Shown here piece after piece: positions 21,916-53,820 of a stretch of DNA of 64,000 nt (the stretch's first letter is position 1; every line of letters starts with the position of its first letter). This DNA is from Girardia tigrina. Lineage: Eukaryota. The stretch lies in contig MQRK01249795.1 of NCBI GenBank assembly GCA_001938485.1, positions 4,672-68,671 on the forward strand, in the 5' to 3' direction. A model generated the notes under the pieces. That model saw nothing but the letters and a program-made list of their open reading frames with translations, was not told where the DNA came from and made no database searches. A program made the translations under genes and the position numbers.

Positions 21916-21929
21916 TCTGATTCAATCTG

Positions 21930-24960: not shown

Positions 24961-25144
24961 TCAAAAAAGATTCCTTCAACTAGATCAATCAGAATACTTC
25001 CAAATCTGAGCGTTCGTTGGTTACCTAGAAGGTTAGGTCCTACTGTCCAGGTTTTTTCATTTTTAAAAGAGTGAGGGTTTCTGTTTTTTTGATGACGAGT
25101 TGTAAATTTAACTGCCTTTGTTAAATGAAAATTTTAAATAGTTT

Positions 25145-28100
25145 TGTGAGAATAATTAATAACTATATATTTATAAATTAAAATACATATAATTATTTAT
25201 ATCAATATCATATTATATCAATGGATCCTGAATATATAAAAACTCCTGAGATTGTTTAAATCAATCAGTGTAATTAATTTTAGACGCGCATTATTTGATT
25301 GTGTCATAAAAATAAACGTTATCTATTTTTTTGGACTTTTATTATGAAAATTCTTATATGGCTACCACGCCAAATGTTATCAACAATTTGGCGCCAACAA
25401 TATTCGATGGACACAATGATCAGTTCATTACCGACTGCAACAGGTTCTTTCAAGTTTCGCAAATTCAGGAAGGAATTCGATCGTTATTTGTCAAAGCATT
25501 CATCAATAAAGATTTAATATCTACTTATGAAGCAGTAGATGAGAAAATCATGAATTTCGCGGATCGGATACGGAAGGCATTCAAACGTCAAACATTATTA
25601 ATTCAAGATTTGCAGGAGCTCATGAATTACAGAAAAGGAACCGAAACAGCAAATTCATATGTCAACAAAATTGAGAAGATGGTAGATAAAGTTTTACGCC
25701 ACAAATGGAATAAACAAGAGCTAATGACATATTTTTAACACTGTAACTCACTGTATAGAAGATGTCAGTGTCAAAACTAAAATTTATCTTCAAGAAGCTA
25801 AATCTCAAGATTCAATCAAAGAAGAAGAAGAGAAGATGGATATTATTAAAACAGAAATTCAAGCAGTTGAAGTCGCCAATATCTACAGACGAAAAACATA
25901 TGCCGATACATTGAAAGAACGAACGGCATTCACAAATAATTTTCAACAACAACATCAACGAAGAAATATTCAAACCAATGACTATAACAGACGGACAATG
26001 ACGGGATATTCGAGACAACAAACAGGAAACATGGATTCAAATGTGATGTGTTATGGATGCAAAAAGTTGGGACATATTCGTCGTACATGTCCGGAAAATT
26101 TGAAAAGTTGTTTTGGATGTAGAGGGTCTGGACACGTTAGAAGTGAGTGTCCATATTTAAAATGTTCAGTACGTGGAGCTCAAGATCACCTTGGATATCA
26201 ATACTTCAAGAAAGACGAAAAACGACAACCCAGTCACCAAAACAAGATCCAGTATAACCGATTAGAAAATCAATATCGACATCCAATGACCGGAATTGAC
26301 GAAACTGATGAAACACGATCGACGGGATATGATGCAGAGAAGGTGTCAAACTTCGAGGCTCCGTCAGGTCAGCAGATGATTGGGGCCATACATTAAAAGG
26401 TAATAATATTCAGGATCCTTATATTTGTAATATATATAATTGTAAATGTAGTAATAATAATTTTAATAATCATATATATAATAATAATCATGTTAATAAT
26501 AATATTAATTATCAAAATAATATTTGTAGTGTAAATAGTAGTCATCATATAAATTCAAGAGTATGTAGGTAATAGAACACAGAATAAATATTATATTGAG
26601 GAGACAATGGAATTTGTTATGGATGCAGAAGGTAAAATAGACAATGAGATTTTTAATGGAAGACCGAGTATATTGACAGTTATAGGGGGTATCAAAATGA
26701 ATTGTTTATAGGACACCGGGGCCCGTATTAATGTAATAGATGAAAAGACTATTAAACAATTACAAGTATCGATGAGTAAGCACACCGTAACATCAGTTGT
26801 ATGTGCAAATGGCAGTGGGATGGAGATGAGTGATACATGTCAAATTAAGGTAAAATTTAAAAATTTAACACTATATCCAGTCTTTTATATTGCGAAAACA
26901 GTTTTTCCATCTATAATCTTCGGAATTGAATTAATTCGATCTTTAGGTCTCGATTTAAGGTGGCAATTTGATGCCAAAAATATAAAACAAGAATCATTTA
27001 CACCTGATATAGTGTGTGCGGATATATATGCTTTAGATCCATATATCGATAAACTTATTTATACGGACAAAGACAGATTTTTGAAATTCAAAGAAACATT
27101 AAATCTACGTGATGGTACAAATTTATATAGATGTATAGATAAGTACAAGAACATTTTTATGGCTGGAAAATGGGATATCGGGAAAACTAAATTAACCAGA
27201 CATGAAATAAAAACATTTAGTGAGCCAATTTTACAGAAGCCTCGTAGACAGCCGGCACATTTGGAACATCACATCGAAAAAGCAATATTGAATTTAGAAG
27301 GACATGGAATAATAGAAAAATGTTCTTCGCCTTGGAACACACCAATGGTTTGTGTGTGGAAAAAGGAGAAAAAGGAAATCCGTTTGTGTTTAGATTTTCG
27401 GCTCCTAAATCAAGTAACTGAGAGACCAGCTTTTCATATTCCAAATGTTGATGAGATGTTGGATTCTTTAATTGGAATGAAGTGGTTTAGTTCCATAGAT
27501 CTGGGTAATGCATATTACCAGGTCGAGTTGGAAAAATCGTCAAAGATGAAAACGGCTTTTTCTACATGGACCGGACAATTTTGTTTTACAAGAATGCCAT
27601 TCGGTATAGCAGCAGCACCGGCTACTTTCCAAAAATTGATGAATGAAATATTGAAGGAAAGAGGCAGTGTTGATCTCAATGACGTGTTGATTTTTTTCAG
27701 AAACAGAAGACGAGCATTTAAAAAGATTGGACCGGTTATTTTCGAGAATTCAATCAGCAAGCCAAAGAATTAACCCAGAAAAATGTAAATTTTTCCAGTA
27801 GAAGATGCGTTTTCTTGGACATATTGTAAATCGAGAAGGAATCAAAATGGATCCGTAGAAAATCCAGACAATAGTAGATTTTGAACAACCAAAATGTGTT
27901 AAAAAATTGCGCAGTTTTTTTGGACTGTGTAATTATTATAGGAAGTTCATTGTAGATTATTCAAAACTAGCAAAAGCGTTGGAAGCAATGTGTGGAAGTT
28001 CTAAATATAGACTTTATTTAAACGTATCTCATTCAGAGGCTTCTAAAATGTTAAAAACAGCCATAACAACTGCCCCTGTATTATGCTAAAAGTATTATTT

Positions 28101-29945: not shown

Positions 29946-31480
29946 GTCATTCAATCTGTCCTAAAATATTGTATTACTTTGAAAAAATATATTAATGTAA
30001 AATGAATTTAAGGAAGATCCCTGACACCACAGGTGTATATGTTGTAAATGACTTCAAATGATCAAAAGATCATTTTCATAAAAGAAAAATTTAAGAAGAT
30101 TATAATTACTATTATAATGGAAAATATTTAAAGTGTTTATGATATTTTTTGGGATATTGATGAACTACAATACTATTTAGGAGCCACGTTTTATGTTTTA
30201 TTGTGAGATGGAATTATAGTTGGTCATGCATACGATCTTGTCATTGAACATCAAAAATTACCGACGAAAAACGAAGTCTATATTAATTTCGGTAAAAAAA
30301 GTTTTCTGTTTGAAACACAAATTGTTACAAATCAGGAATTGATATTTTTTATTATTTATTTTAAAAATATAAATTTATTTAATAAAGAGAAATTCTTTAA
30401 AACGAAGAATGAAAGGAAAGAAAAGAATGAACATGAGATCTTTTTGATTATTAAAAGGTTTAAAAAATAATTGGGATAAAAAACTTTGACAGTTTTAACA
30501 TAAGAAAGAGAAGTGTAGATCAGAAGGTTCCACATATGGTTAACGGTGATGTGAGGTGTAGGAAGGTCTGGCAGAAACGAAAAGCGATCTAGGGACTGGT
30601 GTTAGAACTCTGGTGATTGATATGATGAACTAGCCGAAGGGACGGGCTCGAATCTTGTTAATAACAGTTATACACTTTATATGGAAATGGATAATATGAT
30701 TTTTGTTTTATGGAAACAAATACTTCGACATCTTTATGATAAGAATCTTTTTCTATTGACAAAAATAATTGAAATTTTTCAATTATTGTGCTTTTTTATT
30801 TAAAAATAATATCTTAATTTTTGTTTTGATTATTCAGACAATTTTTGAAATCTGTTTTATTGTCGGGATGGGTCATTAATCCTATTTTCATGAAAATCAT
30901 ACACGAATTAGTTGTTAACATCAATAAAATCGCTATTTTAATAAGTCTCATATACAACCTCTTCCAAAATCAGTATCTAAGTAAACTGTAAAAGTGAGCT
31001 AACTGAAGAAGATAGTAATTCGATCAACTCACTTTCAGCAATAAATAAAAATAATCCAATAATTATTACTATAATTCTATTAACTTCTAAACAAGCTCAC
31101 TGAAGGACAAAAAGGTTAAATGTATATTACAAGAAAAAAATAAGTTTTGTAGGGAGAGTCACTTTGAATTTTTGAAGGATTCGATTGTTGGGATATTCAA
31201 TAGATTAACGGAAAGAATTTTCGATATTCATATTTAGTAGATAGTAAAGGTTTTCCTGAAACTTTTTATAACATTTGTGATCTAAAATCCGTTGATCTAA
31301 TAATTGATAATTAAGATAGGAACAAAAAAATAGAACACATATCAATAAAATACATAAATAAAAAACATATTTTTGTATAACAAACATTTTCTTATTTCAA
31401 ATTGCTCAATGACTTTATTTAAAAAATATTTAACAAATTTAATAGTATTTAATTTAGAATTATTTTGTTTTTTCAAACAG

Positions 31481-31644
31481 TTAATTGTCATATTGAATAA
31501 CTTTTTCTAGTGGAACAATTGGCGATATTTGGTCTTTCCAGAAAAACCTTTTACCAAGATATGAACGTTTTCCAAGATACGAACGTTTTCCATCAACGTA
31601 TTCGTTTTCAAGTCCAAACCGTTTTCCATTGTACGGTCGCTTAT
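31481..31644 (-). CDS. Neuropeptide precursor, last coding exon (GKR-flanked amidated peptides)
   Basis: ttcttttag acceptor, phase 1. Encodes (N)KRPYNGKRFGLENEYVDGKRSYLGKRSYLGKRFFWKDQISPIVPLEKVIQYDN*. The two SYLG copies use synonymous codons. AATAAA lies ~60 nt after the stop (31414-31419). Confidence 0.85.
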
Positions 31645-33479
31645 CTAAAAGAAATTGAACAAATAATATAGGTAAATATAATCGTTTAAAATGCAAATAA
31701 ATTGAAAAATCTGAATTCCGGAAATTGTTTAATTAATCTTTGAAGAAATTTATTCAATGCCAAAATATTTAGAAAATTAAAAATTAAATTTGAAGGAAAT
31801 TGATGAGAAAAGTCATTTGGTATTATTGCATTAATAATAATATTTTCTTTTGAAAAAAAAATAAAATTTCTCCAACTTTTATTTGTTTTGATGTTTAAAC
31901 GTTTAAATTAATTTTTTTAATAAGTTAAAGAAATACAACTTTTGAATTATTTAGTTTTGAAAAACAAATAATTTTTTCTTATATATAATTCATTAAAGAA
32001 AATATTTAATAAATAATAAAAGTTTTATATATAATATGTTTTGATAATATTTTTAAAATTACATAAAAGTAAATCCTTTATTTTTAAAAATATTTTATAA
32101 AATAAATTTAATTATATTGTATTAATTTAATTATCATAGAAAATTAAATTAGGAGATAAAATTTGATCATAACAGAAAATAAAAAGAATAAATTAATCAA
32201 TAATAATTATTAAAAAAAATTAATTAGAAATGAATTTACAGTTTTTTTTTATAAATTCAGTAATATTGAATCAAGCTTCCCTAGAACTATTTTGATCATT
32301 ATAAGATGTTCCTCCTGTAGCGATTATTTTGACGTAGATACGCGCGCATCCTCGTGAACCCAGATTGCGTATGGACGTTTTCATGTTTGGTAATAGTTTG
32401 CAGATTTATTTATTAAAAACGAAATGAAAATTCAAATAGTAATAAAAGGAGAATTTACTATCTTAATTCTTAAATGGGTGACTGAATATTAACAATGACA
32501 CAAATAATTCGACCTGTATGAGTCTCACAGAATAGCTTCTCAAAATGAAGGGATCATTTGGAATTTTAAACAAATCAATCGAGATTTTTAAGAAAGTTTC
32601 AATTATGAGGAATAAAATCGATTTGAAGGTATAAAAAGGTTACAAGATTAAGAAAAATAAATAAAATCTTAAAATTATATAATGTAATGTATAGAAATTA
32701 TAATATCCTTTAGGGATATTTATTTATTAGTATTATGTATTCTTAAATTTGAATTATCTTTTGGTGCGGCCCCTCTAAAATTAAAATTTGAAAACCTTTT
32801 TTTTGGTTTTTGCTAAAGAATAAATCTACTGAATTTAATTCCTAAAAATTCTATCTGTCGCCACTTTTTTTCCGGAATATAAGACATCATATTCCCGCTA
32901 TAATATTTTGATTATTACATTTGATTACTTCCGTCTCTTTGACCGTTCTTCATAAAATAAGTATTTTTTCATATATTTTTAATATTTCTTTGTGAGCGAT
33001 GAAGTTTATAATATTAGCGTCATCCTTGTTTGGTTTAATGATTCCTTTTTAAACTTTCTTTATAAAACAGATGTTTATTTATCAAAATTAATTAAAGTGT
33101 CTTTCAGTTACCTTCTTTATTTTGTTTCTCAACCTTCAACCAAATCTATCAAGCATTTTTGGTTTCTGTCTAACTTCTATTCTCGCTTTGAGTTATTCGA
33201 ACAAGCGGTTGAAGTTCCAAAAATAACATAAATTTCAAAATTAGGATCTCGATTTTTCTTCTAACTTTAGTTACCGTATAACTTTGTTTTTTATTATTCT
33301 TGGATATCAAACAGAATAAATCTATAAATGTTGTAAATTCTTACAACATCAATACATTCACACTTTCAAGCAATTTGAAATATTCCCCACAAAAGTTAAC
33401 AGATTTGGACGCAAAAGAGCAAAAGAATGATGAAATAACCAAATTAATGATGAAAAAGGCGGAGAGAAGCTCAAACGAG

Positions 33480-33900
33480 TAAAATGTGATGAATGTTAGG
33501 GAATAAAGGATAGAATCTCAAAGGAAGCTAAATTTGCTAAAAAGGTTGGCTATTCATATATTCAAGGAACACTCAAGTGAATATATTGACTAGACAGAAA
33601 TAATTTGAGTGTCGGATCACTGCAAAACAAGATGCTTTATTTGAAAGGTTATCTTTCTGGAGAAGCCTTGAAATAATTCGTACTCTAGAATAAAGATCCG
33701 TATCTTTCTGTGACGCATTTGACAAGTTTCGTTATGGAAGAGCTATATGAATTTACTCAAAATTAATGAATGATTTGAACAGTCTGAAGATCATTCAAGA
33801 TGACAATGTAACCAATTTAGTCAAAGTTGAAAGAAAAATAGCGGAGATCGTGATTAAATTTACAATGATGGGCAAAACGGAAAAACTAAACTCAGCTACA
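33480..33900 (+). mobile_element. Decayed LTR-retrotransposon gag-like fragment
   Basis: QNKMLYLKGYLSGEALK* resembles the KxxYLxxxLxGxA gag motif. Confidence 0.35.
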
Positions 33901-36805
33901 AAAGAAAAACCAAAAGCTGAACAAAACTCTTCTGATAAAATGGGAACGGTAAGTAATGGAAAATGATATGTTGAATTTTGTATGTTGAGTTTAGTATTTG
34001 GAAATGTGTTTCTCCCACCCAGATGGAAAATTGATAATTTGGATGTTCACGATTGAAAAAGGAAACAATCCCAAAAATTCATAATTATTGAAAGTGCTTT
34101 CTTTAACAAATATATTGATAATTCATAACTATAACGGAAAGATATCCAAGAAAAGAAATTTTTCTCGATCACAACAACTAGAATCAGGTCGATTGGTTTT
34201 TTAAAGAAATACACGTTACTTGCTTTATTTTTCGTTAGAACTGAATTGTTAGGTTATTGCCTTTCTCAGATCATCTTGATTATTAACGTCTTCAAATAGA
34301 GATTTGGTTTTTTTATTATGGACTGGTTGTAAATTGAAGGAATTGGTTGAGGAAAGACGGAATAGTTATAGTTTACAATTATTATTTAATTTTCGTTTTT
34401 TTTGGAAAAAAGGAATTATTTAATTATTATCTCTTTCGGATCTCCTTGTTTTTCTTCGGAACTTTCTTTTACTGATTGGAAATTGAGGGAATTGGTTAAG
34501 GAAATGGTAAAGTGATGATGGTTTCTAGGAAACTTCTTATTCTATCAATATGTCTTGTCTATCAATATTTTTATTGATTTTTTTATTATTATTAATAGTT
34601 CAATCCAAATTTATTTAAACAGAAAAGAAAATTAAAATGTACATTTACAACGATGAATTATTCGAGTATAATTTGCATTTTAAATTACAGTAAAAGATAT
34701 TTAAAAAACTTTAAAAATATTAAATCGTTTCAAATTTTAATATTAAAAATTTAAATGAAGTAAATAACATTTAACTAAGTTTTTAATTAAATAAATGTTT
34801 TTTCTTTAAATAAAATCATTTTTAAATAAAATTAATATGTAGATAAAATTATTACTAAAATTACAAAATTAAAACTTTAAAAACAAAATCTGAAAGTAAT
34901 GAAAAATTTGTTCGAATAATTGTTTATTAAAAAACATTAACTAAAATTTATCAATTTAGAACGAAGTCGAATTACGAAAGCTTTGCTGAGAGTTGTCCAA
35001 AAGACAATTCTGATTGTATTGAAAATAAAAGTTTGAAAACCGATGTTGATGTTCTTAATAGAGGAAAAATATTTAAACTTAGAAAATAATTTAAAGTAAA
35101 AATTTTAAAAGGTGTCTTTTGACACCTTTGGTTGAAATAGTGTTAATATTAATAATAAATTATAAAACAGTGCCTATGGCCAGTGGGTTGCTTTAACTTC
35201 CAGTAGCATTTTATTTGTTATATGAACTTCATCTTCGGTGTTTTTTGTAATATTTTGATTTGCTTATAAATAATTTATTTAAAACAATATATATTTTTCT
35301 AATTAATTTTGTAAAAAAAAATTTTTCTTTTAAAACTCGTAAAGATTTCGGATTTTTTAAAAGTAGTATAAATAAATTGGAGTTTAAATTTTCATTAAAA
35401 TGAATTAAACTTTTTATTTTTTTGATAATTTTAATTGAATTTTTACATATTTTCCTATTAATTTCATTCATTAAAATAAAAAACTATTAAATAAATCAAT
35501 CTAACCATTAAAATATTAAATTACAATGAAATTCAAGTTATTCAAAAAATAATTTATAAAAGACACAAATACATTTTATTTAAACCACATAATTGTCAAA
35601 TTTATAAATAAATCAAATTATATTATTTTACAATTGTTTAAAATAAAAATAATAATTATTTAATTATTTTATTAATGAATTTTTGACTAATCCCTATTCA
35701 TAAATAGAACTAACTTCCTTAATCTTATAATTAATCAAAGAATATTTTTATAGAATTATTTTTTTGCCAAAAAATATAAATAATTTTCATTTTTTATTTT
35801 ATTGTAATATTTAAAACTTTTATTTATATATTTATCAAAATTAAATCAATTTATTAATAATTAAAATTTTTATCATTAGCTACGATTTTTTGTTCGAACT
35901 TATAATAATTGCTGCCGTTAATATATAAAATATGCATTAAAATTATATTTTCAAACGACCTTTGGTAAATTATAATATAACAATGCCAAATAAGCATTCA
36001 AAATGTACATACAAATTTTCATCAAATTTTAAGTCAAATTATTCCGCAAAAAATCTTTTTTTTATTTTATAAATGTTTTTTTATAATTTGAAAACCCGAA
36101 AGTTATCGAAGCCAAATCCTGTCATTATGAGACATAAGTTTCCAGTTTACGAAGCCAAATTGTTGACTTTTTATTAAGCACTTCGAAAAGATAAAACGAA
36201 ATTTTGTCGTGTAAAATGATTATTCACTTATTGTTCCCTCGGGCTGAACTTTTTATTTCTGACACAAAACTGCTGAGAGAAAAGTTTGATAATAAAACCG
36301 AATAGCGCAAAATAAATTATCCCACACAAAATCTACAAGTTAATTAGCATAATATATAATTTAAAATAAATTAATTTATAATTTAAGAACGAATCGAGAC
36401 AATTATCATTTATATGAAGTTGTGAAACCTTTTATTTACATCGGTTTGAATACCATAAAGCAAAAAACTAAAGTTTGATGTTCTAAAGTTTCCGAAATCT
36501 GAAAAAAATCGATACTTCTAAAAAAATACTTTTCTTGTATAAAAAACGTAAAAGAAGTTGTTTTAAAATTTTTTGGTAATGTTTGATTTAAAATTCTATT
36601 GTAAAATTCCTTAACATCGCTTGTCGTCATTATTCTTCATATATGGATCAAACATGCTTTAAAAAAATTAAAAAAAGATAAAAAATAGTTTGATAAATAT
36701 ATAAAGTATTTTTTAATTCCCCGATAAAATAGCGATAATATTTATTAATTATTCAATTTCGGGCTTTTGATATTTTTTAGTAAACTATGAGATATTTTGA
36801 AAATA

Positions 36806-38040
36806 TTAGAGTGAACCAAAAGTCTTTTCGTATTTTCTACGTCTTTCTGTTCAATTGTTTCTTATTACCAAATAAAGATATTTTATATACATGTTTTATA
36901 TGTTTTTAGAGCTCTTAAACTGCTCTATCACAATATATATTAAAACTTCTAATTAGTCGTTAATATAATTTTTATGGTCTTTTAGAAAAATCATGGAAAA
37001 TTTTGAAATTCGTGTTATTTCACGCCATTACTGGAAACAGGGCTTAGACGCAACTGCAGCAACAAAAAAGATATGCAAAGTTGAAGGCGATAATGTGGTC
37101 TCAAATCGTACTGCACAAAATTGGTTCAAAAGGTTCAACGAAGGCGACATTTACCTCGGAGACAATGCACGTTCAAGCCGACCTATCACCATAGATTCCG
37201 GAGCAATTCATGAAGCCGTCGAGACAAATCCGTCAATAAGTACTCGCAGATTGTCGGCCAAACTCGATATTCCTCAAACATCTATTGTACGACACCTTCA
37301 CGCTCTTGGCAAGGTCAATAGACGATGTCGAGAAGTGCCTCATGAATTGACACAAAATCCGTGCTATGACCGTTTCATCCGTCGAATTGTAATTTGCGAT
37401 GAAAAGTGGGTTTCCTTCAGTAATTCAGACCAACAAAATCAATCGTTGGACTCCGGACAAATGGCGAAACCGGTAGCGAAACGAGATCGTTTCTCAAGGA
37501 AGGCACTTTTGTGTGTTTGGTGGAATTTCGAAGGCGTGGTTCACTTCGAGCTGGTTCCAAATGGTCGTACTATCGACGCTGACCTTTACTGCACCCAACT
37601 TGATCGAATTTATGCGGCACTTGTTGAGAAATACCCCGCTTTGATCAATCGAAAGCGAGTTCTTCTACAACAGAACAATGCAAAACCGCACACCGCCAAA
37701 CAAACAAAGGAAAAAATCAAAAATCTCGACGCCTTTGAACTTCTTCCACACCCAGCGTATAGTACGGATCTTGCGCCATTCGACTATCACATTTTCCGCT
37801 CACACTTTCTTCGCGGTCGCAGCTTCAATAATCTGGCCGAGGTCGAAAACTGGTGTCACCAGTTCTTCGTTTCTAAGAACAAGGATTGGTACCGCAGCGG
37901 GATCGCACAACTTGCCCATAGATGGGTTAAGCTATAGATTCAAATGCCTTTTACTTTGAAACTTAAATGTTTTTTATTTGTTGTAAAATTATGTTTAAAT
38001 TTTTATTAAAAAATACGAAAAGACTTTTGGTTCACCCTAC
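36806..38040 (+). mobile_element. Mariner transposon (DD34D type), nearly intact
   Basis: TA TSDs and ~31-bp TIRs (GTGAACCAAAAGTCTTTTCGTATTTT); single 314-aa ORF. Confidence 0.96.
36993..37937 (+). CDS. Mariner transposase, probably inactive
   Basis: HTH region plus EVPHEL, CDEKW and HPAYSTDLAPFDYHIF. The second catalytic D reads N (QQNNAKPH), and there is an in-frame deletion after PHELT. Confidence 0.9.
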   Translation: MENFEIRVISRHYWKQGLDATAATKKICKVEGDNVVSNRTAQNWFKRFNEGDIYLGDNARSSRPITIDSGAIHEAVETNPSISTRRLSAKLDIPQTSIVRHLHALGKVNRRCREVPHELTQNPCYDRFIRRIVICDEKWVSFSNSDQQNQSLDSGQMAKPVAKRDRFSRKALLCVWWNFEGVVHFELVPNGRTIDADLYCTQLDRIYAALVEKYPALINRKRVLLQQNNAKPHTAKQTKEKIKNLDAFELLPHPAYSTDLAPFDYHIFRSHFLRGRSFNNLAEVENWCHQFFVSKNKDWYRSGIAQLAHRWVKL

Positions 38041-38189
38041 TAAATATCTAAATAAACAAATAACTAATAAAATCAATATATTTTATATATTTTTATAAGT
38101 AAAATTATTAAAGTTATAAACTTTTTATTTAAAAACACAAAATAAAATTATTTTACTCAATGTATTGTAATCTCAGAGTCAAATTGGAA

Positions 38190-38560
38190 GCTATACCACG
38201 TAGACATTTTATCAGTAGTATGTTGCCATACGTTGAAAACAAAGTGCAAGACGTACGTTCAGTTGAACATAATTTACCTTGCTTGCTGTTTTGCTTCGTT
38301 CTCCTCTATTGTATTTTTATTTTCTGTTCTCAGTGTACTCTTGTTCTCTAAGAAAATTATTGAAATACTTGTAGAAATCAGCTGGTGTCCACCAAAAGAC
38401 ATCTGAAAAGTATGGTGCCATTCCTCCACTGAATTGTTTGTTCGTGGTAGATGTCTAGTACTCGATCTCGAACGATCGACAATGTTACTAGCAATCTCGG
38501 ACTAACTCTGCGGTTTCATCTTTAGCGACTAGTATATTTTTCATCCCACTAGTCATACAA
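38190..38560 (-). mobile_element. Mutator/MULE transposase C-terminal remnant
   Basis: LPRTNNSVEEWHHTFQ..GGH matches the MULE RTNNxxEGWH motif. Confidence 0.65.
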
Positions 38561-41500
38561 ATTCTCAACAACATCATTTAATTCTTCAAAGGCAGTTATT
38601 TATCATTTCTTTTCATAATTTTACAATCATATCGCTGATGTGTATTATTTAAATGAGTTTTATATGAAAATAAAAAAATAATGATCAGCGCTATTTTGAC
38701 ATGAAATTTGGTGCTATTTTTCGTTCACTTTTTTATCTATATATTAATATATTAATATACTTGACAAAATATATTATTAAGTATTTCTTTGATATTTGTA
38801 ATCAGGAAATTTTTTTAAAATATTATCTCTTCAGTATAAATTGATTATTATTAATTTGAATTGTTTAAATTTTCATCATTCAACTTATCACATATTTTTA
38901 ACGATTTTTCTAGTAGCACCAAATATTACAAATTTTTCATGTCTGGGATTGATCGACTTAGTACAATCTTCTTTCAACGGCTTTCACAAAAACCAACCCA
39001 TAATTTATATATTGGCAATAAATAAAATCTCGTACATCACAACAGATCAAAGATCTTATAAACATTTTACCCTTAACTTTAATATAAAACTATATAAATG
39101 TCTTATAAAATTGGGTGAGAACGCCTATCAGACTCTGTGGAGTTAATTTTTGATTGGAAAGTTCACGAAAAGAATCAGCTGATACAATCTTGCCGTGATG
39201 TTTGTCGAGCGGTTCATTCGATCAATTATTACTATATCTGATCAATTCAGCCAAGTCACTCGACGATATCCAAATAGTTGGCAGCTATATATTAGGGAAA
39301 CAGAACTTATCAGATTGTCGGTTCAACAATTGAAATCTCATTAAATTCTTTCTCTAATCTGTGTAAGAATATAAATACATGTTTCACAAATGAATCAATA
39401 AAGGAAATATTTTCATCTTTGTTATAGTCATACAAATCGTTGACATAAGACGTCTTCACTAATTGAAACAGAAAAGACAAGAACATAGCTAAGCATTCAA
39501 CTTACTCAGCAAAAGTTTTGAATTTACACATAAATTATCAACAATCAAATATCATAAAATGTAAAAAATATCAAAACAGAAACAAAGTAATAAACATTTA
39601 TTTTAATTTTGAGCATATAAATAATAATAATAATTATCGTGTTTTTGATGGGCGAGGCGGCTGGATCAAGCGCGCTGGAGTAGAGATCGAGTCTGTTCTG
39701 GAGATAGTGGAGTCCGAGCGGCGTCGGCGCATTCTGTCTCAGTCCTTCAAACAATGCGGATGTGTTGTTGATCTGATGTCGACACGGTGACGAGTTTTGA
39801 AAGAATTTCATGTGGTCCGGTTGATCGAATAGATTCTTGATCTAGATCGATTGATTCGCGTATTGTTGGGAAGTGAAGACGGCGATTATCGGGTTCCGAT
39901 TTGTCATGAGATCGTTCGAAAATTGTTGGGCGGTTAAATAGGTGACTTTTTGTTGCAAAATAAGTTGATTGTAGTTCGTTAATTATAATAAATAATTGTA
40001 GTTCAATGATTGTAGTTCAATAATTATAATAAATAATTGCACAAAAAATGCGCGGTAAATAAATATTGTATTTAATTTTATCGTTATTAGTTTGTTAATT
40101 ATTTTAAACAAACTAATTTCTTTAAACTTACAATTATAAATAACACTAAAATAACAAAAAATAATACATACAAGTTTTTACATTTTGCTTACTTAAATTA
40201 TAAAAATTTTGTTTTTATAATTATAAAATACATTAATATTTATATAAAAAATAGTTTCAATTAAAATTAAACCTAATTACATGGAACTTTCTTAAATCAC
40301 ACAATTCTAAAAACACACAACAATAATCATTTATTTTTTACTTTAAATTATTAGAATAAAGTTTCAAAGATTTAAATAAGAAACATTGGGAAAAATCGTA
40401 AAAAAATTTCTAATCTCCTGAAGATTATTTAGAATTTGGTATGTTGAAATAAAAATGTTGAATTGGGTATTTGAAAATGATTAAAAATTATTTTGGGTGT
40501 TCTTGGTGAAAGATTGTTGCAACATAATTAGCATTTTAAATTACAACATAAAATATTTAAAATGAAATTATTTTTTAGTAATGTAAAAAACTTTAAACTA
40601 AAATTTTGAAAAACGAATAAATAATTTTTTTTAAAATAAAAGTCAATGAAATAATTTTTCAGTCAATTGAAAGTTTTTTTTAAAAACAATATTAAATAGT
40701 AAAATTTCTATTTGAAAATATTAAAATATTAAATTTCTAAAAATGTATAAAATAATCATGACACTGTAAAATTAATTTAATCTAGTTTTATTTCAAACGA
40801 TAACCGTTTTGTTGACTGTGGTCCTTTTGACAATAAGAATTTTGAAAATAATAATAAAGATTTGGAAAACCATATTAGTGTTCTTAATATACATATTTTG
40901 TAATTCTTAAAAAAAAGTATTTTTAAACTGGTTAGATATCTGAACGTATGAAACAACTGAATTCTACTCAGTTTTACTGAAACAAAAATTTTATTAAACT
41001 AGAACAGGAACATTAGTAGTAAACTATAATTTTCTATTGTAATCAAGGATTTCACAAATTTTATTTTAGAGTGACTTTGTAAGGTGACACTCAATTTTGT
41101 TGGGAGAGTCATTCGACCGTATTTATTCTTTTAAATGAATAGTTTGTCTGAAGGATAATTCATCCTCCGTATATGTTGACAATTTCAGACAACTTTTCTA
41201 TTTTGGGAATAAATTTCTGTCAACAGTTGACAATTCGAACAAATCTGCTCTGTTTTATATTAAAAGAATACCTTATTGATTGTATTCTAGATTTGTAAAG
41301 ATGATATTGAGAAATAATAAGAGTATTTATATTTATAATATAATCACTTCAATAATAATATTACTGAAAAAATAGGATTATTTTAGGAAATAAAAGTTTG
41401 TATTAATTTATATTTTGTATGGGTTTTTATTATCTATTAATTAAAGCGAAGATTAGTATCTGTTCTTAAATGAATGTTGATTGTGGTTTTGTTAAAAAAG

Positions 41501-41749
41501 AATCAATAGTTTCAACTAGTGAGTGTTCGGGATTCACATCTTATTATGACTATTATATGATATTAATATCGGTATTTATATTCACTTTGAATTTTTTGTT
41601 ATTTGTTTACATAATGTAATTATTGATCTTGAAAAGAAGGATTGATGTGCACAATTTAAAAGATTTGCTGAGTAGTAAAATTATTTGAAGATCGTTCTTT
41701 TTTTTAATTAAAATTGCAAATGTTCATCTAAATACTACGAAACTAAATA

Positions 41750-41988
41750 CAGTAGATTTCGCTTATAGAGAACTTGCTTAAAGAGAATAAAATCGGGTAA
41801 AGAGAACTTTTTGGTTTTTTTTAACTTTTTGAACTTTTTTTTTAAAATAAATGTGTTGATTAGTAAAGTTTTTTTTGATATTTTTTTAAAAATTATCCTT
41901 ATAAAAAAGTATCTGTTAAAGAGAAATATCGGTTATAGAGAACATTTTTTCAAGTCCCAAAATTATTCTCTTTAAGCGGTATCTACTG
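41750..41988. mobile_element. pogo/Tigger-type MITE
   Basis: TA flanks; TIR CAGTAGATTTCGCTTATAGAGAA / TTCTCTTTAAGCGGTATCTACTG; internal AGAGAA subrepeats. Confidence 0.85.
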
Positions 41989-42025
41989 TACTACGTAACT
42001 AAACTGAACCATTGAAAAATGTATT

Positions 42026-43964
42026 TATGAGGAATATTTTTAAATTGATTTTTTTGTGTGTTGTTTTAGGATTTCTTTCTCCCACCCAGAAGGAGGATTG
42101 ATATTTTAAATGAAGGAAGAGTGTTATTATTCTATCAAACAATGTCTATTTCTACAGCTAAAATTATTTTGTAATTTAAATTGTAAATTATTTTGTAATT
42201 GATATTGTAAATTAAACTGTTATTTAAATATAAAAAAAATATATCAATCAAAAAAGATGCTTACCGAATATGGCGTTACTCAAAATTGTAGTAATGATGA
42301 GTGTATTTCTGTTGTTAATAAATGTTTTCACACAAATTGTGATATTGTTAATAGTTACTTGCTATATAATGGTATGTATAAATGTAAATACTTAGGCTGT
42401 CCCAAAAGTCCTCAGGTGGCCTTTAAAAACACACTAATATTTTACCAAATTTAACCAAATTTGGACTGAATATTATTCAGACTGTCATAAATACTGTGTT
42501 AAAATTTCAAAGCATAAAATTTGAAACTTACCAAAAAAATAATATTATTAACCAACAAAAAAAAATAGATGCAGTGAATTTAAAAATTTATTTAAAAAAA
42601 TATTTTAAAAATTTCTTAAGCAACAACATATTCACCATTGTTGTCAATAACCAACTGACAATAGTTGAAAAGTTTATCTAGTTGATTTTTTAATGTTTCT
42701 GTTGATAAAGAATTAAAAAGGAATTTACAAGCTTCTTCAATTTCTTCATGTGATTTGAAAATATGATTTTTAAAACTTTTCTTCATTTTTGAAAACAAGA
42801 ATCTGTCTCACAGATTAAAATCTGACTATAGGGCGATTGATAAATTTTTTCAATTTATCTTCTTTCAAAAAAAGAGTTGCTTCTTTGATAGAATGAGGTC
42901 TTGCATTATCATGCCACCACTTAAGTTCCTTTGGCTTGATGCTGTTAGATCTAAGTTTCCGCCATTTTTCACCGGTGTCATGAACAAAGTTCACATACGC
43001 CTCGGAATCAATCTTAGTAACATATGGCAGTGCTTTTACATTAAAACGTTTGTTGCAGGTAAAGGTTACGAAAACAAGAGATTTTTTATCAGTCATTGGT
43101 GATACCTTCATCACTTTTGGTGGAACAGCATTAGAAGGAATCCAAACTTTGTGATCCTCTTTCTTTCCTCTACCTTGGAAAAAGACCCATGTCTCATCCT
43201 CGATCACTATGTTGGAATATGCTTCATCACCCATCTGTGAAATTACATGGCGTATATGCTTTGCAGTGTTAATGCGTTGTTGTTTATTAGCAGCAGAAAG
43301 TTCATAAGGGACCCAAACAGAGCAAACTTTTTTGTAATGAAGTTTTTCACGCAAAATTTTGTGGACTGTATTTTTACCGAAAGAAAGTTCATTTTCAATA
43401 TAACGCAAAGACGCATTTGGAGCTTCATCAATCACTTCTTTGACTGCTTTAATCTTTTCATCGTCTATTAATGATGGCCTGCCACTTCTTGATGAATCGT
43501 CGAAGGACGTCCGCTTTTCTTTTTTAAAATCAGTCAACCATTGTTGAATAGTTTTCAATGCTGAGTGATTTGCGTCTTCCCATGCCTGCTGAAGTTGCTG
43601 AAGAATTTCTGAAGCAGAGAATCCTCTTTTACTTTGAGTTAGAACAAAAAAACGTTGGCAACATTTATTTGGTTCCATTGTTAAAAACTGCTTGATTTGA
43701 ATTCGCTACACTTTTAAAATTTCAATACTTTAATAAAACAAAATTTTACTTTTTTTTAATTTTATGCTTTGAAATTTTAACACAGTATTTATGACATCCT
43801 GAATAATATTCAGTCCAAATTTGGTTAAATTTGGTAAAATATTAGTGTGTTTTTAAAGGCCCCCTGAGTACTTTTTGGACAGCCTAAATATATATAAGAA
43901 ATATGAAAAGATATAAATAAAAAAAGATTTAAAATAATGAAAAGGAAAAAATGGTTCAAATCCA
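42026..43964 (+). mobile_element. Solo LTR (short family) hosting a nested mariner
   Basis: Starts TATGAGGAATATT, ends CA, 5-bp TSD GTATT, core box TCTCCCACCCAGAAGG; homologous to 17145-17654. Confidence 0.8.
42391..43888 (-). mobile_element. Mariner-like DD34D transposon with ~130-bp TIRs; transposase 43678-~42617 with 3' frameshifts
   Basis: TA TSDs; TIRs 42391-42521 and 43758-43888. Motifs WVPYEL, IEDETW, HDNARPH and reconstructed SPYS(P)DFNL(C)DRFLF, with 34 residues between the second and third Asp. Confidence 0.95.
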
Positions 43965-44524
43965 GTATTTTTATATTATCAAATTATTATTATTATTATT
44001 GTTAATCTTATGATGTTCGAATATTTACTGAAGTTTTTAAATTAAAAATTTTTCAATAAAAATCATACAACATTATTATTTATAATAAAATAGATGTTAT
44101 TATTTTCGGAAAAAATATTTATTTCAATAATTAATTTATCAAAAAAAAGTTATTTGATCATAAAAATAATTGTAATAATCAAATCAGCACGACAGTCGGG
44201 TTGTTATTATTTTTTAACTATTATTCTATTATTGCTATTACTATTACACCTTGACAATTATATTCTTGGAGAGTCTACATGAAAGAAATAATATTATTTA
44301 ATATAAAATATCCGTTAATAAAACAACTTTCTAATTTTATGTTTAAAGGATATAATTATTCTTACTTTGAAAATAATTATCCATTTGATTTTTTTAAAAA
44401 TAAAAATAATTTGCTATTTAAAATGAGCAAAATGCTTAGACTTTTAAAGAGTCGTTTTTGACTTACTTTAAGTTGCGAAATTAAAATAAATCAGATAAAT
44501 AAATGAAATTAAGAATAAATTTAT

Positions 44525-45105
44525 TTACTTGTTTATTTACCTCGTTTATTTCGAACGTCTAATTAAACTTTTTATTCAAGAAATAATTTAACTATTTTTA
44601 CATTTTGATCTGGACTTTCTTTTCTGATCGTTTTTTGCGAGTTTTATTTTGAAAATCTAGTGAACAATTGCATCCAAGAAATAATTTAGCTATTTCTACA
44701 ATTGGATTTTGACTTTCGATAAATCCGATCCTCGCGAGTTCCTTTTGAACATCCAGTTTACAATTCTATCTAAGAAGTAATTTAGCTATTTTTACATTTT
44801 TTTCGACAAACGATAAGAATATGTATTTGGTGTCATTTATTTTAAACATCTAGTTTACACATTTTTTCAAGAAGTAATTTTGCTATTTCTGCATTTTTAT
44901 TTTGGCTTTCGATAATTATTGTTCCATGCGTGTTCTTTTTTGGAACATCTATTTTAAAATTCCATTTTAGAAGTAATTTAACTATTTCTACATTTTGATC
45001 TTTTTAAGGATTATTAAGAACATTGAGACAAGTCTCGTTTGAATCTTTATTGCAATCACATTTAGAGTCATTACAACTCACAGAAGGTCTTTCATCGTTT
45101 GTCAT
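44525..45105 (-). pseudogene. Decayed ankyrin-repeat coding sequence (~5 repeats, ~98-bp period)
   Basis: Minus strand NVEIVKLLLKWNFKIDV, NAEIAKLLLEKMCKLDV, VKIAKLLL, VEIAKLFL..LDFQNK and LDVRNKRG, with stops and frameshifts. Confidence 0.8.
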
Positions 45106-46469
45106 AATTCTAATTGGTTTTCTAATTTCTATTTTTAATCATGATTATTCGAACAATTTTTCTAAGTTATTTTTTTAAAATATTAATTAAAAAAATAATA
45201 ATTTTTACATTTCTCAATAAATCCCAAAATAATAAAAATGTCATCAAATTATTTAAAATGCATTTAATTTAAATTTTACTAAAAATTATTAAACTTAATT
45301 TTAATTGTTAAATTAATTCGTACTCTTCTAAAGGCAAAAGGAGGATATACAAATTACTAAATCCCAATTACTGTAATTGAGTATCTGTGCGATCATAATT
45401 GTATACTTTTAATACATTTTTTGTTTAAACGCCTATTTGTTATTAATAATGTTAAACTTTTTTATATACATATCATCTTGTAGAGCTTAAAATTATCTTT
45501 CAGGCAAATATCTAAAAGTTGTGAACCGATTTATACTCCCTAAGTAATTCACGATTTAGTAAAAAATAGAAAAAAAGTATACAATTATGGAAGTCAGTGT
45601 ATATTAATTGTATTTTTATTTAATGTATATTTTATAATAAATGTATGTTGTTTAAATATTTCAAATTAACTTGTAAAATAAGCGCAAAATTTGAAATTGA
45701 AAAACTGTGGATTATAAAATAAATTTTTATTAATGAAAACGCTTTTTGATTTCGGATTTATTAATAAAACCGGAAAAGAAAATAATTGTCAATTTTCGAC
45801 AATTAACAATCTTGACTTCCGATAATTATCGGAGTTTGACATTCAAACAATATTCAACTCTTTGAAAACAAAAATGTTTGGAAATCAACAATAGAATGTT
45901 CAATAAGTTTAGATGAAACTAAATTTGTCCATAGATTCAATGTTTCAGATCAATACATAAGATGATGTTTAAAAAAATGTAGTTTTTTTCATATTTTGAC
46001 TTTAAAAAATAAAAGTTATTTAAACAATTATCAAGTTTCATTAATAACATATATAAATTACAATACACAATATCAAACTTCTTTATTGAATTTCGATATC
46101 GAAATTAATTTTACCGGAAATTTTCTAAAATAAATCAAGTGAATCATATTTTTGTTTACAGAAATTAAAAATTTCCGGTATTTTATTAATAATTCATATT
46201 TACAACGTTGGAAACAGTAAAATGCGTCTCGTATTTTCCTTATTATACATTTTCATATAAGCTTAATCTGTCTGTTGGTCTAGTACAAATTTTGTAATTG
46301 ATTTTTCAACCATTTCAAAATGCTCAAGTAAGCTTAAATTTTGTATACTTGCTCAATTCCAATCATAATACATGAATCAATTAACAAGTATTTTCGTGCA
46401 CGTATAAAAGTGTGTTTATTTTTGAAAACTTTTTTTCTAAATATTCTTCTTCTTTCTTCATTTTTACCT

Positions 46470-46950
46470 TATTTGTTGGGTCGTTGGTGCACCCAATTAT
46501 TCACAAGCCTTCGCAACATATCTCTATTTGTAGCCTCTTTACTCAGACATTCCATGTTCAATCCACTCCATTTTTAAATCGTCTGCCCATTGTGTCTTTG
46601 GTATTCCTTTTGGTCTTTCTCAACCCACTCTTCCTTCAATCATAACCTTTGCAAGTGCCTGTTTTATTATCTGATGTTCATAGAATTTCAGCTTTCTTCT
46701 CTTGATAGTCTCTTCTTTTGATTCTGGTTTTTTACCTATTATTTCTTTCACTCTCATCCAGATAAATTCGTTTATCTTCTTTTCTTCCCACGTGATTTTC
46801 ATTATTCTCATGTAACACTTCATTTCAAACGCTTTAAGTCTATCCATGATCTTCTGATTTATTGTCCAACTCTCACATCCATAGAGGATTGTTGCCCAGA
46901 CATTATTCCTTGTGATCCTTATTTTGCTCTTGAGAAGGATTTCTTTGAGG
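46470..46950 (-). mobile_element. RTE-like LINE 3' fragment
   Basis: ILYGCESWT..DRLKAFEMKCYMRIMKITWEEK..IKRRKLKFY..MIEGRV, the typical post-RT region of RTE-clade LINEs. Confidence 0.85.
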
Positions 46951-49900
46951 TTAAGTTACTTGTTTAATATTAATGTATACTTTTGGTGTATTCTATCTTA
47001 AATTTTGTCTAAATCACTATTTTATGAAATCACTATAAAAAGTGTGACTTTGTATGTCTCTTGTTAAGGGTTTCACAAAATAAGCGCTGGACATTTGTGT
47101 ATTGTAATTTATCCTCATCAATACATTAATTTTGCTTAATAAGAAACTAAAGATTCTCAAAACCTACTGATAAAGAAATATGTATGTACATGATACAGAT
47201 TTTAATGGTTTTATTTAAATTTAACCGTATCATTTAACTAAAAGAGTAGGATTATAAAAAGATAATATTTACTTGGTTCTCTCAATCATGAAAGATTTTT
47301 TTGATGTAGGTAAGTTAATAAAAAGTTATTTAATCTCCTAATTAGAACTTAGAGCCTTAAATTATGTCCTTGAAACATTCCAATACTTGCCACGGAAGCA
47401 TTGCTCCAATAATTGCAAAGATAGTATTGAAGAATTATTTTGATGCTTTTGAAGATATGGAGACCCTTTGACTCAATGTCGTTAAATTACTACATAAGTT
47501 TACTTTATTTGAGGTAAAATATGTCTCGAAGCTCTTTTCCTCAAGAATCATCTTTACTTTCTCTCTGAGAAAATCTAGGAACGGTCTCTGATAAACACAG
47601 TTCAAGGTTTCTTCTTACAATAGACTTTTTACGAATCACTTCCGAGATTGGACATACTCAAGATTTGCTACTAAATATTAACTCTAGAAACTGTTGATTA
47701 TGATTTTTGACTAAAGGTACTAGCGAGAAATATTTACAGTTTTGTCTTTGTTAATTATCTCTGATTGTTTTAAATGCAAGATTAAATTCTGTTGATTTTA
47801 TTATACTCAGTTTTGTAGAAAAGTGGTTGTGATGAATAAATTTATATTTTGAAAGCAGCACGTCAAAATACCCTACATAAGCCTCTACATAGGTCAAATG
47901 TAAATAAGTTTTGCATGATCATGTAATTTTTGTTTAATTTCATGATAAAAATTAGATTGAAACGTAACAACAATTAGATTAAACGTGTCGGGCTTGGCGG
48001 AGACGTTCATCCAAGTGATGGGTGCGGGGAAAGGCCGCTAGTGAAAGAACCCCTGTGGAAACCAGGGCCAGTGTAAAGGACGCCATCGGGCCGATAACTG
48101 CGGCGAATTTATTTATGTACAAACGGGGCACTTTTGCTCACAGACAAAAAAAAAGAAATCAGATAGATGAGACGCAAATTTTGAGCAAGCTAAAGGGAAA
48201 ATTAAAGATGAGTATCTAGATTCCAGAACACGAATGATAAAGATAGGCAACTGCGATATCAATATAATGTTATAAAAATATTTCTTACTCAGAACAAATG
48301 ATAGGGTGACCTATGATGAACACAATGAAATATGAAGGATTTTAAGCATGAGACTATGATCTTTGTATTATGCTCATTGGAGGCCGAAAATCTTGAAAAT
48401 TATGTTTTAGACTCATTTTACTTATTTGATTTGAATTAGGTATTATGGAGGATCTACCTAAAATATTATTATTATTAATATAAATAAATTAATATTAATA
48501 AATTATAAAAGTTTAACTTAAATATCCACGATGTAATTTAATGATTAAAACATTTAAAAAATAAAGAATTATTTTTTTTAAGAACAGTTGTATTTTTTCA
48601 TTTTTAATTAAATTTGAAAACATATTTTAGAAATTAAAAAATAATAATTCTTTGATAAAAATTTTTTTCCCAAGAATTGACTTTTATATTTTTCTTTTTG
48701 ATATTTAATCTATTATATTAATTTTCTCAAATTTCTCTTTTTTTTGTTTTCAAATACATGAAAAAATTAAAAAAAGATTTCCAATTCCAATACTTAAAAA
48801 TAAAAAAATATTTATAATAAAAAAATAATATTGATCAGCATATATTGATTTTAAAATGGATAATAGAAGAGACTTAATATTGGATTAAAATAATAATCCA
48901 TAAAAGATATAAATAAAAATAAAATAAACAATAATTTAAAACAGATAATATAATAAAATATCGAGAAAATATAAAATAAATTCTGTTTAAAAATTGTCTT
49001 TGTTCCTCAAAAATTACAAAATATGTGTTAAATGAAACAAATTAATTACAATTGTTGTGTGCCACCACATTTCGTTGTTTTTTATTGTTTGTTGTACAGG
49101 AGAATTTGGAAATCTTGTAGTTGTGTTTGCGTTGTGTTTGTGTTCATTTTTTTTATGTGTTTCGTTGTGTGTAAGTGCCGTTTCCTGTCCTGTTTTTGTG
49201 GATCGAAGTAATTTTAGATTTGGTGTAAAAAAATTAATTTAAAAGTGGTAATATTAATCATGTTTTCAATGCGTCGATTTGTAGCCTAATTAAATCANNN
49301 NNNNNNNNNNNNNNNNNNNNNNNNNNNNNNAATATTTTCACAAAAAATAAAAACAGAAATTCCCACTCATCTAAATCAAATTCTCAATTTCCAAGATTCA
49401 GAAAAATCCTAAAAACTATTTTTATTTGTATTTAAATCAAATTTTCTAATTGTCAATTTTATTCATTAGAGTGTTTTGTTTTGTCGTATTAATGATTTTT
49501 TTTTGCATGCAAAACTTTCGCCATATACGAAATAAAGATTAAAAACAGACTTAATCGTTTTTATTTACCAAGATTGTTTTATCGGGATTTTTGAAAACAA
49601 ACCGAATCTGTCTTACCGAACAACAGAATGACAACAACAATTAATTAAAAAAAATAATATTTCCTTTTTTAAAAGTATTAAAATTTTTCTTTGATAAAAA
49701 ACATCTATAAATATTTCAAATGAAAAAAAATAAAAGAAAATTAAAAACATTCAAAATTATTCATGTATAACGATAAAAATAAAAAAAAAGAATCTTGGAT
49801 TACTACGTAAAAAAAGAAATTATTTTTTCAAATAAATTATTTTTTTTATATATTTTTTACAAAAATATTTTTGTTTTCTTAAATAAGAAACAATAATAAT

Positions 49901-49999
49901 CAGAAAATTTTTAATTAATAAAAAATAATGAAAATTCAAAATAAATTAAAGTTTATTTTACTTATTTAAATATTAGTTTAAATAATAATTAATTATATT

Positions 50000-50135
50000 T
50001 GTAGTGATACTACTTTTTAATTAATGCATATATATGTATGTCTAGATATATATATTAATATGCGTATATATATATATATATATATNNNNNNNNNNNNNNN
50101 NNNNNNNNNNNNNNNNNNNNNNNNNNNNNNNNNNN

Positions 50136-50170
<35 letters not shown>

Positions 50171-51173
50171 TATTGAATAATTCAATCAATAAAATTAAAT
50201 TCCCTGGATTGTTAATTAAATTCGACGTGTTGTTATCCGAAATTCAACGTTGGAGACCCTCAGATTCGGAATGTATTGGTTGCAGTATTCGAGGAAATTG
50301 GTTCGTATATCGGGACACAATCCGCCAGAACTCGTCTAATTCAAAGAAGAAATTCTAATTTATCTCGACATTTCTATCAGCGGAATTTATAGTGATAACA
50401 TCCAGTTATAGTATAACAATCAATGAAGCGTTTGTCTATCTCCCAAATATCATAAGCTATGGTTTATTATGATTATTTTTAACTATCATACTGATAATTC
50501 GAACTTTTATGTCTAACTTTTATCTATAATTTGATTTAATTGATCCGTCTTTTAATTCTGTAACCAGTGAGTATGTTTTGTTTAAAGCACGACAATGTCA
50601 ATTTTATGTATGCTGTTACGGGTATCACAATGTGACCACATAATAGATTTCTATCGTCCCAAACTAGTAAGTTGGTATACGTACCAGTCAATGTCAGTGG
50701 ATCTTTATCGCATGGAGAAAATCAACAAATCGATTTCCATATCATTAACCGCGACGCATCCAACCGCAGCACTAATCATTTATCGGGTTTTCAGGTTTAA
50801 TCGGTACTGGAAATTCGTCACACATGGCACTCGCGCCGACGAATCTTCATCAATCTACCGACATCTAAACAACTCGCATAGTGATTTTCACCCGATGAAT
50901 GTTTAGTAGCAATCTAAACATGGAATCAACATTTGTTCAGCAAATCTCATGTTGATGATTTCAGTTGACACATTTTTACTGGTACAGAAATATACTTAAT
51001 ACTGATTTGGGACTTCAGAAAACAATCTATTTATTTCATAACTAATATCAATAATCCTGAAACAACCGTATGTTGATCATTCTAAACAATAAATTTTCCA
51101 GATTATTTTTGTGTTTATTATTTTATTTAGTTAATGGAAAATAGAGATCCACTCGCTCTCAATTTCCATTACA
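50000..51173 (-). mobile_element. Solo LTR (long TGTAATGGAA family)
   Basis: TG...CA termini, 5-bp TSD ATATT, (TA)n near the 3' end spanning a gap; homologous to 52876-53820. Confidence 0.85.
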
Positions 51174-52246
51174 ATATTTACTAATAATAAAAAATATTGT
51201 TTTATTTTATTTAGATTTTGATTCATGAAATTATAATATATCTATTTAGCCTCATTGTCAAAAGTTTTTATTTATAAATTTCATTTATTTATGATATTTA
51301 ATTTATAAACATTAAATTTATTTTTAAAAAAATAATTAATGACTTTTTGTAAAAATCAACTCAATGTAATATTATTATTAAAGTTTTGTTAATTTAATTA
51401 AATTTTTGATATAATAATAACTTTAAATAGGTTATAACTCTTAAAAAAGACATTTCTTTTGATTAGAAATTAGAAAAAAACTTTTATTAAAATTTTATAT
51501 TATATAAACATATGTTTAATTAATTAATAAGTTATTTTAGAACTTCAGATTTAATAACTAAAAAAAATTGTAAGGATTTTAATCAGATTTCTTTATTTTT
51601 ATATGCATTAAAAATAATTATTATTAGATTAATTTATTTAATACAGATAATACAATTTTTTAATTATATGAATATCGAATATAATTATAATAATCCCACT
51701 ATCATAACAATAACAAAATTATTCAGAATTGTAAATCTGTTAACGTAACTCAATTAATTAAAATTATTTTTAATTGAAACAAATGACTTTTAAAAAATAT
51801 TATAAATTAAAAATTATTCCTATAATTACTCTTTTCAAATTTAAATTTTAAATAAAAAATTACAAAAGGCCAAAAACTTGTATAATTTATGAAATTTAAA
51901 ATAAATAAATAAATAAATATAATGTAAAAATATTTATTTTTTTATAATTCCATAAAAATAATTAAAATACAAAAATCCCTAAGTTTTTGTCTCTAAATAT
52001 AAAATACAGGAGAACTTCGTTAGTATGGACTTCACGGAATATTAAAGAAAGAGTTAAAAATATTTAAAAATATTATTTATAAAAATAATTTTATTTATAT
52101 TTAAAATATTTATAATATAACTTATATTATTTATAATTTCAAATGTAAAAATAAAAAAGAATTAACATAAAAAACGTTCTTTTGATTCAGTAATTTACAA
52201 TTATAAATTCAATTTTAAAAATTAAATAAAAATAAAAATAACGAAC

Positions 52247-52331
52247 TCCAATTTCTGTACTCGTAATCGTAAGCTCTGCAGATCGCGATCAAGCAAAGGA
52301 TCAGCAAACAATATTTGTATTTGGGATTCAT
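52247..52331 (-). CDS. Neuropeptide precursor, exon 1 (signal peptide)
   Basis: ATG at 52331. MNPKYKYCLLILCLIAICRA-YDYEYRNW has a basic n-region, hydrophobic h-region and C-x-A cleavage site. Phase-1 donor GTTCGT is followed by a T-rich intron. Confidence 0.75.
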
Positions 52332-52875
52332 GCTTTATTTTATTGTAAAATTCGCAAAATAATATTCCATATTTATTGAAATTTTGACCAATTAAATTTC
52401 GTTAATTTATTTAATGATAAGGAAGTAAAAATAAAAAAATTAAAACTTATTTTGCATGGAATTGTAATAATTCAGGAAATTTTATTTTATATGATAAATT
52501 AAACTTCTGCATGCTATTTGGGTTGAAGTAAGAATATTTATTGCATTTTTAGAAGTTATGTGTAGATGAGTGGTTGAAATTTATCATAGGTAAATGTTTT
52601 CCTAATATTTTTTATAAATAAATTTGAGCAATTTTACTTTTTATCTTTTGGTTAATGATAAAAATAAATGTGTCCATGAAAGATATGAAATTAAATAAGA
52701 TACAATGTATTACTTATAATGTCTCTTACGTTGACTTTTATTTTCTTAATATTTTTTGCATGTTTAAACAAGCTTTTTTTGTATTTAAATTTGTAGAAAA
52801 CCTTTTCTTCATCGTTTAAAATTGCGTTACTTAGATAACAGTCAAATTTTAAAACCCTTTCATAGCAATCCACTT

Positions 52876-53820
52876 TGTAATGGAAGAGAATTTCTTAATG
52901 TAATTTCCTCTTCTATTATCGTTATAGAATAATTAGATAAATGAGATGAATAATATTTATTATGAACACAATAGACACCAGATTCTCTTGAATACAATTA
53001 ATTGTCAAATTATTTGGCGACAATAAGTACTTTATGGCCATGTCCAAATGAGTGTTGCCGAAATCGTCTAATTGAATTTGTTGTAGAGAACGCTGATTTT
53101 CCCCGTTTAGTCTGTTACTAAATATCAGTCTGATGAACTCGCAATGCAAGTGGTTTAGGTGCTGGTTGTTTGGTGGAAATTCGTCGGTGAAAGTACCATG
53201 TGAGACAAATTTCCAGTTCCGGCTAAACCAGAAAACCCGACAAATGAATAGTGGTCCGGTTGGATGTGTCACAGAAAAACAATGGGGAAATCAGCTTGTA
53301 GATTTTTCCAATGCGACAAAAATCAGCGGACTTCGACTGAACCAGAATACTTAGTCACTGAATAGGAATAATTGAATTGTATTATTTGTGTATGATATCA
53401 CATTCAAAGTGGTACAATGAAGAACTATAGTTGAAGTTGTCTTTCACTTTCGAATCTTGTGAGTTAAAAAGGTTAATAGAAATATTACTAGGATATTTGC
53501 GAAAGCGTGCCACCATAAATTAAATCCAAGCTTGATAAAACTACATCTTAATCAGTATTAATAAAACTGCCAATACAGATATAGCAAGTATCGCGACACA
53601 GTTCTAGAATCTGGATAATTTTAATTTGAATTGCTGTTATCCGAATAGATGGAGGTAAATTGTCTGTAAATGTTATTTCCATTGTCATGCGGATCACGAA
53701 GAATGTGTTGAAACATAATCCGAAATAAAACCCAGTCATCTAACTATTTCATTTTAAATTATCGATTGAATCGATAATCATAATAATTTTTTATTATATA
53801 GTAGTAGCAAAGCTACTACT
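52876..53820 (+). mobile_element. Solo LTR (long TGTAATGGAA family)
   Basis: Starts TGTAATGGAA, 5-bp TSD CACTT; central core aligns with 50700-50960. Confidence 0.85.

Follow-up and report, generated by a model that had tools for sequence, protein, structure and literature searches.

The window analysed here, a 64,000-nucleotide stretch of the Girardia tigrina contig MQRK01249795.1 (assembly GCA_001938485.1, positions 4,672 to 68,671 of the forward strand), carries on its minus strand a small two-exon gene for a predicted neuropeptide prohormone. The coding part of exon 1 (52247-52331, minus strand, 85 nt) begins with an ATG, two codons downstream of an in-frame TAA (52335-52337, minus strand), encodes a predicted signal peptide and the first eight residues of a peptide that starts with YDY and ends with N, and stops in phase 1 at a GT donor (next bases GTTCGT). 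The coding part of exon 2 (31481-31644, minus strand, 164 nt), which is preceded by a polypyrimidine tract and an AG acceptor, contains every dibasic site as well as the stop codon. A candidate poly(A) signal, AATAAA, follows at 31414-31419 (minus strand); one contig assembled from sequencing reads, X7, aligns as far as 31421 and then continues for 22 more diverged letters. The coordinates, phase and translations that the initial annotation assigned to both exons were found in the sequence exactly as given.

Exon 2 is the sole open stretch in the window with at least two G-K-R sites, and it carries four, which exceeds the maximum of three seen in any one open stretch across 100 shuffles of the window, a value reached once; the proposed pattern of dibasic and amidation sites was thus borne out. 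When each exon was searched separately against the 1.43-Gb assembly, one match was obtained per exon, and no second copy of exon 1 or exon 2, intronless copies included, was found in the genome assembly. Exon 1 also gave a second, weak match (L003), which was dismissed since only AT-rich upstream sequence aligned.

The predicted signal peptide comprises 20 residues (52272-52331, minus strand), with a basic n-region, a hydrophobic core at residues 8-18 (hydropathy peak of 3.67 over residues 9-17) and C-R-A before the cut. Both the hydropathy and the residues at -3 and -1 agree with the N-terminal signal peptide claimed originally; the cut site itself is placed by the -3/-1 rule and by the position of YDY directly after the signal in a Schmidtea precursor, Smed-SPP-14, discussed below. 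In the prohormone pathway, PC2 first cleaves at K-R sites, the basic residues left behind are removed by carboxypeptidase E, and the glycine thus exposed is converted to an amide by PHM/PAL. Exon 2 encodes candidate substrates for these steps on the minus strand, in the order PYN-G (31625-31636, predicted PYNamide), an acidic nine-residue peptide followed by glycine (FGL...VD-G, 31589-31618), an 18-nt tandem of SYLG-KR units (31547-31582), and a C-terminal peptide of 21 residues that would not be amidated (31484-31546). Taken together, the signal peptide and the dibasic and amidation sites support the identification of the precursor as a neuropeptide prohormone whose peptide processing is predicted.

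The amidated tripeptides had been described as falling below the usual mass range of peptidomics. However, the MH+ values we computed for SYLamide (381.21) and PYNamide (392.19), as well as for the related TYLamide (395.23), lie within the m/z 300-1,800 scanned by Collins et al. 2010 (PMC2953531), although none of these peptides was reported there. SPP-14 peptides have no row in the mass spectrometry tables of that study, and processing of the precursor is thus a prediction in both species.

Whether the two exons belong together was addressed by aligning contigs from four sequencing runs (four studies, three organism labels) to positions 31000-31900. These contigs covered exon 2 alone, with no coverage of the intron side of this interval in any of the four runs, and in all four the alignment broke off exactly at 31644, beyond which the unaligned letters reverse-complement to the final 30 bases of exon 1. 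The evidence on the exon 1 side consists of these 30 nt, with the ATG and the 5' end lying beyond them, and the RNA status of the runs is presumed, the contigs themselves being intronless. Since the contigs join 31644 straight to the end of exon 1, the junction is real, includes no intermediate exon and spans both gaps in the assembly. As searches of the genome turned up no intronless copy, spliced mRNA is the simple reading of these contigs. Exon 1 and exon 2 are therefore parts of one spliced transcript, and the pairing of 52247 with 31644, which had been proposed from the sequence, was exactly right. Intermediate exons, which the initial annotation had allowed for, are ruled out by the direct join in the contigs of all four runs.

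The GT-AG intron (31645-52246, minus strand) measures an estimated 20,602 nt as assembled and includes two N gaps, at 49298-49330 and at 50086-50135, the second of which sits in an (AT)n tract. As both gaps are within the intron, the reading frame is unaffected. The description of this intron as filled with transposable elements was partly substantiated, in that it holds one clear mariner-type transposase ORF (Mos1-type, 36993-37937, plus strand; Pfam Transposase_1, E 3.6e-19, and HTH_48, E 1e-13), which lies outside the prohormone coding sequence, and one weaker mariner-like ORF (42815-43678, minus strand; HTH_32, E 4.4e-7, under the curated cut-off).

Other repeats were observed in and around the gene. 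The intron contains a degenerate tandem of ~97-nt units in 3.7 copies (44637-44999). Two ORFs flanking exon 1, at 50595-50906 (plus strand, no Pfam match) and 52922-53272 (minus strand), have similar translated stretches, which suggests that they are two inverted copies of one repeat. Downstream of the gene, a 42-nt stretch (31029-31071) was matched by unrelated contigs with different flanks in three runs and is probably a short dispersed repeat, while Ty3/gypsy-type retrotransposon fragments matching a zinc knuckle, reverse transcriptase and integrase in Pfam extend over several broken ORFs at 21693-27773. A region at 63245-63769 resembles these fragments by eye and has no Pfam match. A transposase remnant with a weak Tc3-type Pfam match lies at 14932-15333, and a further stretch at 2476-2841 appears mariner-like by eye, also with no Pfam match. 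No Rfam match was obtained within the window.

The same contigs altered the count of the repeated peptide. The initial annotation described an 82-residue ORF with two SYLamide copies, and this holds for the window. In contrast, the tandem is longer by 18 nt, in frame, in each of the four contigs; this insertion constitutes a third SYLG-KR unit and gives a precursor of 88 residues. The two units in the window differ at synonymous positions only (TCG/TCA and GGA/GGT), exactly as had been claimed. For run X1 no letter differences from the window are listed, and the third unit of its contig falls within a perfect 18-nt tandem that is 44 nt long as measured by hand; hence the two-unit form in the window corresponds to the X1 form minus one perfect unit, which points either to collapse during assembly or to an allele that arose by slippage. 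Differences among the runs in the amidated units were all synonymous. Two amino-acid changes were observed, both in flanking peptides: at 31542, the second residue of the C-terminal peptide, three runs have S where the window and X1 have F, and run X6 has D in place of E at a position in exon 1.

The initial annotation recognised no family for this precursor and proposed that it might encode an undescribed signalling peptide. We found a match in the planarian prohormone catalogue of Collins et al. 2010 (PMC2953531), namely secreted peptide prohormone-14 of Schmidtea mediterranea (Smed-spp-14, GenBank BK007030), whose PYNamide and three copies of TYLamide were predicted in that study. There the precursor is predicted to yield first a peptide with YDY...N, then PYNamide, an acidic amide that starts with NGL, three copies of TYLamide and lastly a C-terminal peptide; in the supplement the precursor string has an extra Y before PYN, while the peptide list gives PYNamide (PMC2953531). 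Compared by eye rather than by alignment score, the Girardia precursor matches Smed-SPP-14 peptide by peptide, in order and in number. Both consist of a signal peptide, YDY...N, KR, PYNG, KR, an acidic xGL...G, KR, xYLG-KR x3 and a non-amidated C-terminal peptide, with all six K-R sites in register and with a first peptide that spans nine residues, starts with YDY and ends with N. Three repeats are present in both when the Girardia expressed contigs are counted, whereas the assembled Girardia genome shows two. The precursors differ in the repeated tripeptide (SYL in Girardia, TYL in Smed-SPP-14), in the middle peptide, which is diverged and one residue shorter in Girardia than its NGL...FM-amide counterpart, in the C-terminal peptide (21 residues versus 24, with little identity) and in the signal peptide, which has also diverged.

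In the 2010 prohormone file, PYN-G and xYL-G peptides were seen in spp-14 only (PMC2953531). In our pattern search of the Girardia genome, KR-PYNG-KR was found once and a YLG-KR tandem once, and KR-TYLG-KR gave no match, which makes this locus the only spp-14 candidate found, as judged in a draft assembly of 255,254 contigs. On this comparison of sequences, we are highly confident that the locus is the single Girardia orthologue of Smed-spp-14. The gene is thus the correct annotation of a further member of a prohormone family catalogued in 2010, and its peptides are not new.

We considered whether the precursor might instead represent an undescribed prohormone family that resembles spp-14 only through short, low-complexity G-K-R repeats. 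Database searches, with proteins queried exon by exon, returned nothing that would identify it: no homologous protein was found for exon 2 or for an 83-residue open frame scored on residues 31-83, neither exon had a Pfam match, and phmmer against 1.8 billion representatives gave two matches only, both unrelated (E about 3.5e-4), and did not return SPP-14. These results, together with the divergent C-terminal peptide, would fit a new family. However, the first word search left out proteins of more than 92 residues, and SPP-14 as printed is longer; moreover, five different peptides match in the same order, which goes beyond what the repeat alone would give, and the genome searches yielded no better candidate for spp-14. 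A separate family is accordingly very improbable. Text searches of the literature for SYLG, SYLamide, TYLamide and PYNamide gave nothing relevant, no SPP-14 motif occurred in the main text of Ong 2016 or in the Fasciola 2022 supplements, and no schistosome counterpart is listed in Table 3 of Collins 2010. We found no report of an spp-14 orthologue in a second species in a literature whose coverage here was incomplete.

A paralogue within the spp-14 family, or a relative of NPP-12, could also resemble Smed-spp-14 without being its one-to-one orthologue. Smed-NPP-12 was predicted to yield three copies of NYFamide (2010 prohormone file, PMC2953531), and SYLamide, TYLamide and NYFamide share an x-Y-hydrophobic-amide form. 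Like the Girardia gene, Smed-npp-12 is built of tandem six-residue units with such a predicted tripeptide; unlike it, Smed-npp-12 is a separate gene lacking PYNG or any second type of amidated peptide, and it has its own Girardia counterpart. NYFG-KR repeats, as in Smed-npp-12, were present on two other Girardia contigs, where L005:1-140 (G000:C84338) and L006:65-200 (G000:C226560) encode the final exon of a precursor resembling NPP-12, and they were absent from the spp-14-like gene itself. Their presence identifies the genome as that of a planarian. Although another copy could be missing from an assembly in this many pieces, both exons are single-copy; with npp-12 represented at loci of its own and no second copy detected, we consider a paralogue or NPP-12 relative very unlikely.

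The two NPP-12-like contigs carry five NYFG units in one case and three in the other, and their ends differ, which could reflect haplotypes, paralogues or an assembly variant. They display the same kind of 18-nt difference in unit number as the spp-14 locus.

Finally, the two N gaps between the exons and the presumed RNA nature of the runs would allow the exon pairing to be a scaffolding artefact, or the spliced contigs to derive from a DNA retrocopy, but with the same GT-AG join recovered in four studies with no intron coverage and with no intronless copy detected in the genome, we regard the chance of this as negligible.

Amidated tripeptides cut from multi-copy precursors include TRH and molluscan NdWFamide. 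The Girardia gene has no sequence resemblance to either of these systems and contains no pyroglutamate site. The initial annotation called amidated tripeptides rare, but predicted ones are not exceptional in planarians, as NPP-12 with its three copies of NYFamide illustrates, so that those of spp-14 have a prior planarian precedent.

In S. mediterranea, spp-14 is expressed in the cephalic ganglia and, along the ventral nerve cords, in cells that form a single line (Collins 2010, PMC2953531). A recent preprint on another genus ranked spp-14 in its top six for brain regeneration and reported that spp-14 RNAi lowers stem-cell number and the number of cells per colony after sublethal irradiation; pc2, CPE and PHM-1 also regulate planarian regeneration in that study, and the RNAi data do not tell which peptide acts (bioRxiv 10.64898/2026.10.10.758126). 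By analogy with the orthologue, the Girardia precursor would be made in neurons of the brain and ventral nerve cord, and its signal peptide would route it into the neuronal secretory pathway. Following the established pathway, cleavage at K-R by PC2, trimming by carboxypeptidase E and amidation of the exposed glycines by PHM/PAL would then release PYNamide, one acidic amide, SYLamide (three copies from the expressed alleles) and two non-amidated flanking peptides. These products would act, most likely via a GPCR, as neuromodulators or neurohormones, and they may contribute to stem-cell maintenance and brain regeneration as reported for the orthologue; no receptor for SPP-14 peptides was found in the literature examined.

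Among these predicted products, the repeated and conserved [S/T]YLamide is most likely the main ligand, with PYNamide second. It is possible, though we hold this only tentatively, that [S/T]YLamide and PYNamide are the conserved products of spp-14 and true three-residue ligands, perhaps forming one family with the NYFamide of npp-12, and that, acting through a GPCR, they take part in the control of planarian stem cells by the nervous system.

The finding is of modest importance in itself: a small gene of a kind that gene finders can miss is now correctly annotated, and a probable repeat collapse or allele is flagged in the assembly at the SYLG-KR tandem. The comparison between genera indicates that PYNamide and the three xYLamide copies have been kept while the flanking peptides drift. 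This conservation makes PYNamide and xYLamide the peptides to synthesise for receptor screens following the 2026 spp-14 RNAi result.
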